DNA of 64,000 nt, from sequence record OR608733.1, one strand, 5' to 3'. Each line of letters opens with the position of its first letter. The first letter of the stretch is position 1. The translations under genes were made by a program, and so were the position numbers. The notes under the pieces are model-generated. The model was not told the DNA's origin. It saw only the letters and a program-made list of their open reading frames with translations, and made no database searches. This document shows, one piece after another, positions 8,293 to 53,837 of the stretch.

Positions 8293-8310
8293 GGAGCCCC
8301 GAAGGGCTCC
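8293..8310 (-). terminator. Terminator after phuZ
   Basis: GGAGCCC-CGAA-GGGCTCC with T-tract on the minus strand (A-run 8280-8292). Confidence 0.75.
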
Positions 8311-8318
8311 AGTATAAG

Positions 8319-9302
8319 TTAATCGAATACAAGACCACTACTAGTTGCTTGGTCATCCACATCTAGAGTAGACTGACGCTTACGCATATTAGCTTTGGCT
8401 CGATTCATCATTTCACGACGTTCTTCTAATCGCTTACGAATATCTTCAATAGATAGGCCATTGATCACAAAATGCATTTGATCGAAATCATATTTTTCAG
8501 GATCAGCATAACCAGTAGTACGAGTTAGAACTGTACTAATTGATACATCGCGATCAGGATCAGTGTATAGTGAAGCAATAGAAATTGGATCCAGAATAGC
8601 CTGAGCTTCTTGACGATCGAAACACACGTGTAATTGGACAGTCTGTACAGGTACATCATGGTGCTTATGGAAGTGTGCCCAGTTAGTGATATCCATTAGA
8701 TCAAGACTTTGGTGTTCTTGATTAAATAGAATTACTAGTGCATTTAGTACTTCAAGAATGTTTTGGTTCACCATTGATTGCGGTATACCTTCAACATTCT
8801 CATGATAGTTAATAATCATCGGAACTTTACTAACAGAGGAAACCCCTTCAAAAGTCTTAAGGCTACCACTGCTATTACGAAGACTAATATCACTGTCGTA
8901 AGATCCAATGACCACACTTACAACTACTTCACCTTGTTGTTGTAGATGACTAACAAGAGAAGGACCAATGGTTGAACCAGAAGCACCACCCATTGAGTAT
9001 ACCACGATGTTAGTATCCCCTGCTGGGAAATGATGGGCAATGGCAGGAATATGTGCAGAGATTAGTTCTGCGGCTGCCTTACGATCTTTACCCATACCGA
9101 TAGCACGTTTACGTGCAGTCTGGTCAGCTAGCTTAGTATCCGCTTCAATAATGATCGTATTATCGTCAGTATTGTGTTTGTGTTTATTCTGTACACTGGT
9201 ATCAATGTAGCAAACATCCTCATGATAACCATGGAATAGTTCACCAATACGGAAACCAGCACCACCACAAAAGTAAATTCGAGTTTTTACTTTAGACATC
9301 AT
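8319..9302 (-). CDS. phuZ: Tubulin-like spindle protein PhuZ/TubZ (phiKZ gp39-like)
   Basis: CGGAG N-terminal motif, GGASGS tubulin/FtsZ signature, 327 aa, C-terminal ...SSGLVFD; recognised as phiKZ TubZ. Confidence 0.95.
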   Translation of the reverse strand: MMSKVKTRIYFCGGAGFRIGELFHGYHEDVCYIDTSVQNKHKHNTDDNTIIIEADTKLADQTARKRAIGMGKDRKAAAELISAHIPAIAHHFPAGDTNIVVYSMGGASGSTIGPSLVSHLQQQGEVVVSVVIGSYDSDISLRNSSGSLKTFEGVSSVSKVPMIINYHENVEGIPQSMVNQNILEVLNALVILFNQEHQSLDLMDITNWAHFHKHHDVPVQTVQLHVCFDRQEAQAILDPISIASLYTDPDRDVSISTVLTRTTGYADPEKYDFDQMHFVINGLSIEDIRKRLEERREMMNRAKANMRKRQSTLDVDDQATSSGLVFD

Positions 9303-9352
9303 TACACCTCATTGTGATTAATATAATTTCATATACCAACTTGTAAATGGTA

Positions 9353-50261: not shown

Positions 50262-50337
<76 letters not shown>

Positions 50338-50421: not shown

Positions 50422-51429
50422 ATGTTTGAATTACTATTATCACCAGATATAGGCGAAGAGTTACCCTTGGTTGGATTTAATGAAATTATTAAATTAGGTG
50501 ATCTACCTGTAGCGTTAGCTGGTACAATGTCATATGTGGATGGAAATACACTGTATGTTGGATCTGGTCATCATACTGAAGGACAAACAGCTGCAACTGT
50601 GTTCAGACGTTTTACCATATCGCCATTTGCCGATATAGGTGCAACTGCTTCTGGAACATTCTTACCAGGGGTATCTTTAGGATTTGGGACATTACATAAG
50701 AATAACTTTATTGTTTATGGCGGTATTACTGGATGGAACTCGGCTGGTAATGGTGGTACGGGAACATCTAACTTTATACAACATTTTGATATAGCTACAG
50801 GCAATAGGGTTGAGCGATATAGTGGTCCCGTACCACTTTGGGGCACAGCCTCCGCATCAGATGGTAATGATCTTATTCTATGCGTTAACCCAATTGGCGT
50901 AAACGCAATGCGATTAAAACCATCAAGTAAGTCTTGGCTTAGCGGGCAAGACTATTCAGGTGGTGCTCGTTCAGGTCAACAGTTATTCTTTTATAATGGT
51001 TACTTTTACCATTTTGGTGGTTGGGATAATACAAAGAACATACCTAATCTTGAAGTTTATCGATATAATGCAACTACCTTAATATGGGAGCAAACACCTT
51101 GGATGATTATACCTGCTGATAAAGGAACAATCTGGCAAGGTAATGGTTATGTAGATGGGGACTATTTTAATTACCTTAACGCTGTTGATGTCGGCGGTGT
51201 AACTAAAATGTTTGCACAACGTTTTAATATTAGGCGCCGGAAATGGGCTGAACCATTTGAACTAGGTATCGGATTCCTTAATATTTCATCTATAGCTAAA
51301 GGTCCGGATAATAGCATGATCATTGTAGGTGGATCTAAAATGCCAGTTGGTGGTGGAGCATATATGTTGAAAAGCCAATTGTTATCAGGTATCTATCAGG
51401 TAAAACTAGCACCATTAATCATTGATTAA
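50422..51429 (+). CDS. Kelch-like beta-propeller protein (probable virion/tail-associated)
   Basis: Repeated GG...Y/F...W units (LYVGSG, FIVYGG, FYHFGG, IIVGG). Confidence 0.75.
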   Translation: MFELLLSPDIGEELPLVGFNEIIKLGDLPVALAGTMSYVDGNTLYVGSGHHTEGQTAATVFRRFTISPFADIGATASGTFLPGVSLGFGTLHKNNFIVYGGITGWNSAGNGGTGTSNFIQHFDIATGNRVERYSGPVPLWGTASASDGNDLILCVNPIGVNAMRLKPSSKSWLSGQDYSGGARSGQQLFFYNGYFYHFGGWDNTKNIPNLEVYRYNATTLIWEQTPWMIIPADKGTIWQGNGYVDGDYFNYLNAVDVGGVTKMFAQRFNIRRRKWAEPFELGIGFLNISSIAKGPDNSMIIVGGSKMPVGGGAYMLKSQLLSGIYQVKLAPLIID

Positions 51430-52387: not shown

Positions 52388-52424
52388 TCCGTGATAGCTC
52401 AGTCGGTAGAGCAAATGGCTGTTA
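52388..52424 (+). pseudogene. tRNA-Asn 5' fragment (nt 1-37)
   Basis: 35/37 identical to 50262-50298; differences lie in the anticodon stem. Confidence 0.85.
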
Positions 52425-52433
52425 CGATTTCAT

Positions 52434-52520
52434 TGGTAAGTACCCGAGTGGCAGCAGGGAGCGGACTGTTAATCCGTTGGCGAAAGCCCACCGTAGGTTC
52501 GAATCCTACCTTACCAGCCA
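52434..52520 (+). tRNA. Class II tRNA with GUU anticodon on a tRNA-Tyr-like scaffold
   Basis: 87 nt; acceptor TGGTAAG/CTTACCA, G73, CCA; loop CTGTTAA; variable arm GGC-GAAA-GCC; T arm GTAGG-TTCGAAT-CCTAC. Confidence 0.88.
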
Positions 52521-52526
52521 ATTTCT

Positions 52527-52550
52527 AAAAGTAGCCAGCTGGCTACTTTT
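52527..52550 (+). terminator. Perfect palindromic terminator after the class II tRNA
   Basis: AAAAGTAGCCAGCTGGCTACTTTT. Confidence 0.75.
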
Positions 52551-52603
52551 ATCTTGTTCTATAGATCGAACTAGCTATCTATTTTTTAAACCCTAGGTTC
52601 GAT

Positions 52604-53162
52604 ATGAAAGAAAAAAATAATTAATGGTTATCGGGCTCTGTATTTACCTGAACATCGGCAGGCAAAAGCTAACCCCAAAATGTTTGGATGGGTATACGAA
52701 CACCGTGTAGTCGGTGAAGATACAATCGGAAGATCTCTTTACGATGACGAAGAGGTTCATCATTTGGATGAGAACAAACTCAATAACCATCCCGATAATC
52801 TTTTGATCCTCCCTCAATCACAGCATCTAAAACTACATGCATGGATGAAACGACTGGGCATTGATCCAAAGAACTATCCTACAAAACTTTGTGGTGCTTG
52901 TGGTAGGGTAATGAATCATAAATTGATTAAATTCTGTAACCCTGAGTGTTCTGCCAAAGGTCGACGTAAGGTTGATCGACCATCTAAAGAACAACTCGTC
53001 CTTGACGTTACATTGTTATCTCTTGTGAAAATAGGAGAAAAGTATGGGGTATCGGATAATGCAATTCGTAAATGGTGTCGGTCATACAAAATCAATATTC
53101 CAGCTAGGTTTATTAGGGTCAGCACTAATGGGGGTATTAGCACCTTGGCCCCCACACAATAA
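52604..53162 (+). CDS. HNH homing endonuclease with Zn-ribbon and HTH; frameshifted at A7 near the 5' end
   Basis: YEHRVV...EEVHHLDENKLNNHPDNL...H; CGAC...FCNPEC; KYGVSDNAIRKW. Track frame starts at 52680 but is open back to 52608. Confidence 0.85.
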
Positions 53163-53196
53163 AAATATACTCGATGTAGATTAATATACAAAAACA

Positions 53197-53237
53197 TAAT
53201 CACTGGGTCCCTGGTTCGAGTCCAGGTCACGGAGCCA
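53197..53237 (+). pseudogene. tRNA-Asn 3' fragment (nt 36-76)
   Basis: 41/41 identical to 50297-50337, including CCA. Confidence 0.9.
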
Positions 53238-53554: not shown

Positions 53555-53837
53555 GACATTAGTTCGTGCAAAGCTGATTACTGAAGCTGGTCAATGGATG
53601 TCGTCTGACTGGGAATGTGGTTTCCGTGCATGTCGATTCGTGAAACTTGGTAATGATCATGTAAACATAAAAGACTTTGAGGCTATGATCACGGCATTCG
53701 AAGTTGGTGACATGTTAGTGATTTGGCCAAATGGGCTTAGAACTTCGTATAGTGTGGATAATTTCAATAAGTACTTTTCCCATATCAAAGATGAATACCA
53801 TGAGACTGATCTCCGTCCACTCTTTTACCCCAAGTAG
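53547..53837 (+). CDS. Hypothetical protein (96 aa), SH3-like GDxLV motif
   Basis: FEVGDMLVIWPNG...F..YF. Confidence 0.7.
   Translation: MAKTLVRAKLITEAGQWMSSDWECGFRACRFVKLGNDHVNIKDFEAMITAFEVGDMLVIWPNGLRTSYSVDNFNKYFSHIKDEYHETDLRPLFYPK

Follow-up and report, generated by a model that had tools for sequence, protein, structure and literature searches.

What kind of element breaks a tRNA gene in two and carries another tRNA gene of the same specificity? This question is raised by a locus in sequence record OR608733.1, of which a stretch of 64,000 nucleotides (the window) was analysed. At this locus a tRNA-Asn gene is split by an insert that holds a second, differently built tRNA-Asn(GUU) and an HNH endonuclease gene. 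We propose that the insert is probably a free-standing HNH homing-endonuclease cassette located in the anticodon loop of a canonical tRNA-Asn gene, with the structurally different tRNA-Asn(GUU) as its cargo. Over the window region, identity was 100% to Pseudomonas phages 124.01, 2PS and 14Ps5-6 and 99.6% to phiKZ, where the annotated order at the locus is PHIKZ297, tRNA-Asn, PHIKZ296 (HNH endonuclease) and PHIKZ295.1. A literature search found no mention of PHIKZ296/gp296 of phiKZ or of a split tRNA-Asn in phiKZ.

Anatomy of the split tRNA-Asn gene

Two tRNA-Asn loci are distinguished here, locus #1, with an intact tRNA-Asn (copy #1) beside tRNA-Asp, and locus #2, with the tRNA-Asn split by the cassette; the loci of relatives, including metagenomic phage contigs, are labelled with L-numbers. 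A first-pass annotation made from the letters of the window had described two tRNA-Asn halves with 35/37 and 41/41 matches to the intact copy, sharing a TA at their junction and lying about 770 bp apart. Coordinates, matches and the shared TA were all confirmed, and the insert measured exactly 774 bp against the empty allele of phage Wadjak 2 (Table 1). The contents that it had listed, an 87-nt tRNA(GUU), a terminator and a gene with HNH, zinc-ribbon and helix-turn-helix (HTH) parts, were recovered by ARAGORN, Rfam, hairpin and Pfam analyses. The split point lies in the anticodon loop of the canonical tRNA-Asn, the mismatches of the 5' half to copy #1 are G28A and A31G, and matches as good as either half arose by chance in 0 of 100 shuffles. 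The HNH gene was the sole open reading frame (ORF) longer than 60 aa within the insert. Copy #1, the presumed target type of the element, was unchanged in sequence in 33 Phikzvirus records.

The anticodon loop is where bacterial tRNA group I introns classically lie, and the acceptor-stem halves are still complementary in five lineages, both of which could suggest that the insert is an intron or the gene a split tRNA, with the halves joined at the RNA level into a functional canonical tRNA-Asn. We regard this as very improbable. Rfam returned only tRNAs, with no Intron_gpI match at E≤1 between 48000 and 56000 or at E≤0.1 in L023, L026, L029 and L030, in agreement with the initial remark that the insert bears no group I hallmark. 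The possible 3' ends of the insert are A, T or A and not the terminal G of a group I intron, while the internal tRNA and terminator would put the halves on different transcripts. Moreover, stem-breaking changes are accumulating in the 5' half, and nucleotides 35–41 are missing in PA1C-type phages, roughly 34/35–43 in L026 and L155, and more in L156, so that no anticodon arm could be rebuilt. Since these relatives miss part of the anticodon arm, paired halves are not proof of a working tRNA. An integrase island was also rejected, as no recombinase or integrase-sized ORF was present in the insert, in line with the first reading, and the tRNA pieces are complementary parts rather than direct repeats.

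The presence of repeats is the only feature that would point to mis-assembly of two tRNA-Asn copies, a concern raised at the outset. The identical structure was found in 10 separate Phikzvirus deposits, including the original phiKZ record AF399011, as well as in four PA1C-like genomes and unrelated metagenome assemblies, making the likelihood of an artefact practically negligible.

Table 1. Positions of the tRNA-Asn genes, tRNA parts and cassette features in the window
Feature	Position	Strand	Evidence or remark
Intact canonical (class I, 76-nt) tRNA-Asn(GUU), copy #1, beside tRNA-Asp	50262-50337	+	ARAGORN; Rfam 70.3 bits
5' half, nt 1-37 of the second canonical tRNA-Asn gene (locus #2)	52388-52424	+	35/37 vs copy #1
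Linker CGATTTCAT between 5' half and cargo tRNA	52425-52433	+	Found also with the cargo tRNA at locus #1 of OMKO1/HUST_1-type phages
Cargo tRNA-Asn(GUU), 87 nt, long variable arm (class II, type A)	52434-52520	+	ARAGORN; Rfam tRNA 53.7 bits
Intrinsic-terminator-like hairpin 3' of cargo tRNA	52526-52551	+	Homologous to the hairpin after copy #1
Original HNH start, now a 6-codon stub (MKEKNN, stop)	52604-52624	+	A7 run 52611-52617, one A more than PA1C
HNH reading frame (PHIKZ296)	52608-53162	+	Annotated ORF from internal ATG 52680
Cassette 3' spacer	53163-53196	+	Largely missing from PA1C-type phages
3' half, nt 36-76 of the split canonical tRNA-Asn	53197-53237	+	41/41 vs copy #1

Empty, filled and rearranged alleles

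We aligned 3.4 kb around the site in 10 Phikzvirus genomes, as the first-pass annotation had suggested, and found precise empty alleles. Phages Wadjak 2, PA7, 30-1, Bobae and SL2 carried an intact 76-nt tRNA-Asn exactly at the split position, and locus #2 was likewise intact in HUST_1 and Churi. In these seven empty alleles the 774-bp gap fell exactly at the junction, with flanks at least 98% identical to those of the window; in Wadjak 2 the 80 nt on each side were identical. In several empty alleles the restored tRNA at locus #2 had the sequence of copy #1.

A third arrangement was observed in eight phages (OMKO1, HUST_1, Churi and others) at locus #1, beside tRNA-Asp. It consisted, in this order, of the 5' half (nt 1–37, with G34T), the linker CGATTTCAT, the cargo tRNA and the locus #1 terminator, with no HNH gene and no 3' half (L004:3464-3596 in OMKO1, L009:1502-1634 in HUST_1 and L021:1248-1334 in Churi). 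OMKO1 lacked locus #2, and HUST_1 and Churi had an intact canonical copy there. From its sequence, this arrangement of the OMKO1/HUST_1-type phages looks like an ectopic repair product, and it is what would be expected if copy #1 had broken near the anticodon and a filled locus #2 had served as the repair template, the right crossover falling in the two similar terminators.

The 5' half decayed by steps, from 37/37 matches in Brmt to 36/37 in phiKZ (G28A) and 35/37 in the window (G28A and A31G), while the 3' half differed at three T-loop positions in phiKZ and Brmt and was 41/41 only in the strain type of the window. Because of this stepwise decay and the polymorphic T-loop, the halves behave as pseudogene fragments. 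The mismatches of the 5' half had also been considered as marks of donor 'immunity', which we rejected, as Brmt has neither of them and phiKZ only one, a pattern of decay. The proposal that the upstream copy is protected by its own sequence failed as well, as this copy is identical to the sequence of the split gene. Separately, the T-loop at locus #2 (window 53218-53221) read GAGT in the window, TAAC in the 3' halves of phiKZ and Brmt and in the intact gene of 30-1 (L019:3339-3414), and GAAC in HUST_1 and Churi. The T at position 57, unusual in a working tRNA, may be the scar of a pseudogene phase.

The site and the exchange of cargo in the wider HNH family

A search of 5.8 billion proteins yielded 137 homologues of the HNH protein, and the surrounding DNA was inspected for 15 of them. 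Within the clade of at least 57% identity, all 11 lineages (phiKZ-type, PA1C-type, L023/24, L025, L026, L155, L027/28, L154, Psa21, L012 and L029) had a long-arm tRNA-Asn about 70–160 nt 5' of the HNH gene, and most carriers of this layout were phage genomes larger than 200 kb. A recognisable canonical 5' half, ending in the anticodon loop, was present in seven lineages; both halves were kept in the phiKZ-type, PA1C-type, L026 and L155 lineages, and the 5' half alone in L025, L027 and Psa21. Cargo-free versions were also found, namely L156, a deeper branch with the HNH gene and both halves, and L030, a deeper relative with the HNH gene and a 3' remnant only. An IMG/VR scan with a very general canonical tRNA-Asn pattern gave, among the matches listed, two empty counterparts: the 325-kb contig L072, with an intact canonical tRNA-Asn exactly where L023 has its cargo and HNH gene, and L090, an approximate empty counterpart of L156.

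The cargo was of two types. Type A starts with TGGTAAG and has a tRNA-Tyr-like D-arm, while type B, the cargo of L023, starts with TCCGAGA and has acceptor and T arms like those of the canonical tRNA-Asn. The cargo and HNH trees disagreed, and in the HNH tree each of the two type B lineages grouped with type A lineages in a well-supported clade of its own, indicating at least two exchanges of cargo at a constant site.

In all five lineages with both halves, the acceptor-stem pairing between them was perfect and included lineage-specific pairs (G4-C69/T5-A68 in phiKZ, C5-G68 in PA1C and L156, and A4-T69 in L026 and L155), and the junction-proximal parts of the halves were eroded by deletions and substitutions. 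Since the lineage-specific pairs are intact, the halves derive from genes that were functional in their own lineage, which points either to several invasions of local alleles or to recurrent exchange with intact copies.

The long-arm cargo tRNA-Asn

The cargo tRNA has a cloverleaf fold whose variable arm consists of a 3-bp stem and a GAAA loop, although tRNA-Asn is not expected to be a class II tRNA. We aligned it with 12 relatives from Pseudomonas jumbo phages, the 93-kb phage Y1-MI, metagenomic phage contigs and a T5-like Salmonella phage. Double compensatory changes were observed in the acceptor (5-68 region), D, variable-arm (2/3 pairs) and T stems, hardly any pair was broken in the 12 sequences, and this covariation across stems predicts that the cargo is a selected, functional tRNA.

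Pseudomonas aeruginosa is not known to have an asparaginyl-tRNA synthetase and makes Asn-tRNA by the indirect route. The cargo of the window has the anticodon GUU, G73, U1-A72 and an encoded CCA; GUU, G73 and U1-A72 occurred in both the type A and the type B cargo of Pseudomonas-type phages, and G1-C72 in the T5-like relative. Asn identity is set by the anticodon and G73, while U1-A72 is needed by the amidotransferase for conversion of Asp-tRNAAsn, and G73 is an antideterminant against the tyrosyl- and leucyl-tRNA synthetases (PMC9976931). The presence of U1-A72 in the Pseudomonas phages and of G1-C72 in the T5-like phage thus fits the indirect route of P. aeruginosa. By sequence, the cargo tRNA carries all known Asn identity marks; mischarging by seryl-tRNA synthetase is a possible alternative.

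The cargo tRNA pattern matched only four IMG/VR contigs, and the type A pattern matched 1 of 185,579 species genomes, inside a phage-like tRNA array. Given this near-absence from species genomes, the long-variable-arm tRNA-Asn would appear to be essentially a viral invention. A literature search found no paper on long-variable-arm tRNA-Asn in phages. As a by-product, the analysis reveals a virus-specific long-arm tRNA-Asn family. Members of 83–88 nt with a 3-bp stem and GAAA loop were also seen in tRNA arrays without a related HNH gene, in T5-like phages, Y1-MI and metagenomic phage contigs (L007:1476-1558 in Salmonella phage Shivani, L006:2503-2590, L013:5009-5096(-), L014:3924-4011(-) and L153:2642-2729(-)), the T5-like form in 36 Salmonella and Escherichia records.

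These distributions bear on whether the tRNA, rather than the nuclease, is what selection has favoured. The long-arm tRNA-Asn might be selected for Asn supply in an AT-rich genome or for escape from a host tRNA-targeting nuclease, with the HNH enzyme as a SegB-like vehicle and the split gene as collateral damage. Type A does occur free of the HNH gene in phage arrays (Y1-MI, L013, L014 and L153), with a related one in T5-like phages, and is almost absent from cellular genomes; the OMKO1/HUST_1-type phages retain the cargo tRNA after HNH loss; and T4 SegB amplifies a phage tRNA-Tyr against the Septu defence (PMC13096335). However, selection on the cargo would leave unexplained why the HNH clade is always inside canonical tRNA-Asn and why L156 and L030 are cargo-free. 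Escape from an anticodon-loop nuclease is also not obvious, given that cargo and canonical tRNA-Asn share one anticodon loop, CUGUUAA, and no tRNA-Asn-targeting Pseudomonas defence turned up. We therefore consider such a primacy of the tRNA quite unlikely as the full explanation, although it is largely compatible with a homing cassette and not opposed to it.

The HNH gene and its frameshift

The HNH protein comprises three modules, an HNH_3 domain, a CxxC...CxxC zinc ribbon and a C-terminal HTH. The ORF of the window scored 38.3 bits against Pfam HNH_3 (cut-off 24.8, E=1e-9) and the PA1C and Psa21 orthologues scored 41–45 bits, while PHROGs assigned phrog_15471, 'HNH endonuclease' (E=4e-56). 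Residues H51, H52, N60, N64, H73 and H77 and the four zinc-ribbon cysteines were invariant in 52 homologues. The AlphaFold (AF2) model had a predicted local distance difference test score (pLDDT) of 91, and the 25 residues missing from the internal-start ORF formed a beta-hairpin and a helix in it (pLDDT ~95).

From its first codon onward, the reading frame open from 52608 aligned with the intact 185-aa PA1C protein (88% identity) and also with the 188-aa protein gp412 of Psa21. The ATG at 52604 is out of this frame, the phiKZ-type sequence ATGAAAGAAAAAAATAATTAA having an A run one A longer than ATGAAAGAGAAAATAATTAAC of PA1C. This +1 frameshift was common to phiKZ, Brmt and the window, and all 10 phiKZ-type records aligned only from PA1C residue 2, indicating that the frameshift is real and slightly older than the phiKZ-type group. 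As it parts the start codon from the frame, the HNH copy in the lineage of the window is probably silent, or made only through slippage.

The ratio of non-synonymous to synonymous substitution rates (dN/dS) of the HNH gene between phiKZ and PA1C was 0.054, corresponding to strong purifying selection, and the phiKZ branch (26.5 synonymous and 9.5 non-synonymous changes) showed no excess of amino-acid changes or relaxation. Selection without relaxation on this branch suggests a protein that worked until very recently or that retains a low level of function.

Upstream of the gene (52564-52571 and 52596-52603 in the window, and the same places in L003, L005, L012, L023, L025, L027 and L029), a TTCGAA-like motif (GATCGAAC, ATTCGAAC/T or GTTCGAAC) was found 30–70 nt 5' of the HNH start in all lineages; it may be a promoter, an operator or a T-loop remnant. 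In addition, GGTTCGAT abuts the HNH ATG on its 5' side in the phiKZ, PA1C, L023 and L025 types.

Age of the cassette and origin of the polymorphism

PA1C, BRkr, phiHQ and phiLBG22 carried the cassette at the orthologous place, with the HNH gene intact and halves of nt 1–34 and 42–76. Several observations made here and above weigh against the reading of the insert as a homing cassette. The nucleotide identity of the cassette between phiKZ and PA1C was 83–84%, as compared with 85–88% for neighbouring genes, and the synonymous divergence (pS) of the HNH gene was 0.58, as compared with 0.31–0.50 for PHIKZ298, 299 and 299.1. As its divergence equals or exceeds that of its flanks, the cassette is at least as old as the phiKZ/PA1C split; a recent transfer between phiKZ and PA1C was rejected on these grounds, and the cassette is, by its sequence, old and not newly arrived. 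Position 53585, the sole flank marker that tracks the cassette, was A in all carriers, G with intact locus #2 and A in the outgroup HHBS36_1, so that the carriers are in the outgroup state, a pattern equally compatible with gain of the cassette and with its loss through gene conversion by copy #1. General mosaic recombination is frequent in this region. The HNH gene of the window has no complete in-frame start, its orthologues being intact in PA1C-type phages, Psa21 and L012. The top Foldseek match, I-HmuI (1u3e), was non-significant (E=0.28, TM 0.31), and a PDB sequence search with the intact orthologue gave no match at E≤1, for which reasons the family assignment rests on Pfam, PHROGs and the conserved residues. 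In favour of a homing cassette, BRkr (7 tRNAs) and Psa21 (8 tRNAs), complete genomes with intact HNH genes, had no annotated canonical tRNA-Asn, and the phiKZ-type phages, in which the HNH start is lost, kept theirs, a contrast that agrees, at the level of annotation, with the behaviour expected of the element but comes from few independent lineages.

The age of the cassette, the ancestral state of 53585 in carriers with the derived state in all empties, the mosaic haplotype blocks, the identity of restored copies to copy #1 and the long-term purifying selection on the HNH gene, unusual for a purely selfish gene, favour a different history. The insert would then be immobile, descending vertically from a single ancestral entry, with the HNH enzyme domesticated for phage competition or DNA processing and the polymorphism produced by ordinary recombination or by gene conversion from copy #1. 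Four observations argue otherwise and lead us to consider this history unlikely. The lineage-specific acceptor pairs favour independent disruptions or, at the least, recurrent exchange with intact genes; the cargo type was exchanged at a constant site; cargo-free and cargo-bearing versions coexist with empty counterparts in further lineages; and the three sequenced carrier types in the phiKZ-type group have three different left-flank haplotypes, every one of which also occurs in a phage with an intact locus #2. Together with position 53585, these haplotypes fit equally an old single cassette haplotype recombining into different backgrounds or a single loss that spread.

The 'disrupt-and-replace' element that had been proposed from the window was thus upheld in part. 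Its predictions visible in sequence were borne out, namely empty alleles, a recurrent site and a companion tRNA-Asn nearly always present, while a recent arrival was contradicted by the divergence of the cassette as compared with its flanks.

Proposed mechanism and relation to known systems

For the homing cassette that we favour, we infer three things from the sequences: that the HNH enzyme cleaves at or close to the anticodon loop, that repair copies the cassette and that the cargo gene is insensitive. During mixed infection, the enzyme would nick or cut intact canonical tRNA-Asn genes in related phages, at the anticodon loop or close to it, and recombinational repair from the carrier would copy the cassette, with the two tRNA halves serving as homology arms. 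The cargo tRNA would keep Asn decoding supplied, and its gene would be no substrate, as its stems and long variable arm differ. The start-codon frameshift may explain the survival of copy #1; we propose, as the simplest reason, that the identical intact tRNA-Asn 2 kb upstream is tolerated because the HNH start is frameshifted.

A more specific form of this mechanism is possible, and we advance it tentatively: the HNH enzyme might recognise the anticodon-stem/variable-loop region and the long arm 3' of the anticodon stem might confer immunity, amounting to a natural cleave-and-rescue system on an RNA gene. This would explain the repeated recruitment of two unrelated long-arm types (A and B) as cargo, and also why class II tRNA-Asn is almost confined to viruses. 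Selfish elements would then, through the pressure of their nucleases, drive the emergence of new tRNA architectures.

Free-standing homing endonucleases normally lie between genes, or within genes through intron or intein splicing. The closest precedent for the cassette is SegB of phage T4, also a free-standing endonuclease gene among phage tRNA genes. SegB prefers the tRNA-Asn gene, drives its own gene and neighbouring tRNA genes into T2L and replaces the tRNA markers of the recipient (PMC2330249), and it has been linked to the spread and amplification of useful tRNAs (PMC13096335). However, SegB is a GIY-YIG and not an HNH enzyme, lies between tRNA genes and cuts the T-loop/3' end, whereas the phiKZ cassette interrupts a tRNA gene in its anticodon loop, with both halves left in place, and brings a different tRNA of the same specificity. 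HNH enzymes have a role in the competition of co-infecting phiKZ-like phages (review PMC12908238).

The HNH enzymes of the I-HmuI (SPO1) type and of introns in nucleus-forming jumbo phages share with the cassette the HNH_3 domain, the His/Asn/His residues and a modular tail with a C-terminal HTH. They are encoded within self-splicing group I introns, so that their host gene is functional by splicing, while the phiKZ cassette has no ribozyme, keeps the function through a separate cargo gene and has a zinc ribbon between HNH and HTH. The group I introns of tRNA-Leu(UAA) in cyanobacteria and of tRNA-Ile in Azoarcus are likewise selfish, occupy the anticodon loop and must spare tRNA function. The phiKZ-type cassettes differ from them in having no intron core, no terminal G, exon nucleotides missing in relatives and an internal terminator, and answer the damage by replacement and not by splicing. 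Integrase islands and prophages in tRNA genes, with a displaced 3' end copy, also disrupt a tRNA gene and bring a means of keeping its function, but they rely on an integrase of the tyrosine or serine type and restore the original tRNA sequence at attL; the cassette encodes no integrase, leaves the gene broken and provides a tRNA of a different build. Next to a position between genes and to splicing by an intron or intein, the HNH family seems to represent a third solution, in which an RNA gene is broken for good and a differently built gene of the same function is carried.

In synthetic cleave-and-rescue (ClvR) drives, engineered in insects, Cas9 destroys a needed gene and a recoded, insensitive rescue copy is supplied. 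The phiKZ cassette resembles them in linking a nuclease to a rescue copy, the resistance of which would follow from its divergent sequence, and it would differ in that the pairing is natural, occurs in phages and has an RNA gene as both target and rescue. If the enzymology is as proposed, the cassette would be the natural counterpart of these gene drives. The origin of long-variable-arm tRNA-Asn would then have a possible explanation, and a tRNA-gene-specific nuclease would join the factors in competition and marker exclusion among phiKZ-like therapeutic phages. As phiKZ is a model phage, these proposals are directly testable.

Neighbouring genes and other tRNA-associated nucleases

In PHIKZ298 (window 50442-51411), linked blocks of single-nucleotide polymorphisms, such as 50878-50952 and 51144-51162, were variously combined among ten Phikzvirus genomes, indicating fine-scale mosaic recombination. 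Wadjak 2 (L001:557-2730) had two tandem virion-structural-protein annotations of 1014 and 1008 nt, where phiKZ has the single PHIKZ298.

More distant relatives of the HNH gene adjoin tRNA-Thr. In BRkr, the paralogue RVBP21_2480 (59% identity; L016:41338-42054(-)) lies between an intact tRNA-Thr(UGU) and a homologue of PHIKZ295.1, and in its place HHBS36_1 (L010:4744-4918) has tRNA-Thr and tRNA-Asp with no HNH gene. In L031, a 257-kb metagenomic phage contig, a 48%-identical HNH gene lies between tRNA-Thr and tRNA-Cys, and its stop is directly followed by an apparent T-arm and acceptor 3' strand of another tRNA (TTCTCAGTTCAATTCTGAGTGGTGGCTCCA; positions 2527-2570). The HNH clade may therefore split other tRNA genes as well.

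In Psa21 (L157:3879-5141(-) and 8305-9305(-)), another HNH_3 endonuclease, gp420 (HTH_psq, NUMOD1), lies between tRNA-Leu(UAA) and tRNA-Leu(UAG), and gp396, annotated as 'tRNA splicing ligase', lies about 3 kb from it and hints at tRNA repair. An odd tRNA was also found beside tRNA-Tyr (L026:1961-2036, L027:1477-1558 and L028:427-508), to which ARAGORN gave either a four-base anticodon (actg) or the identity of an 82-nt tRNA-Ser(ACT); it could be a tRNA with an expanded anticodon loop or a pseudogene.

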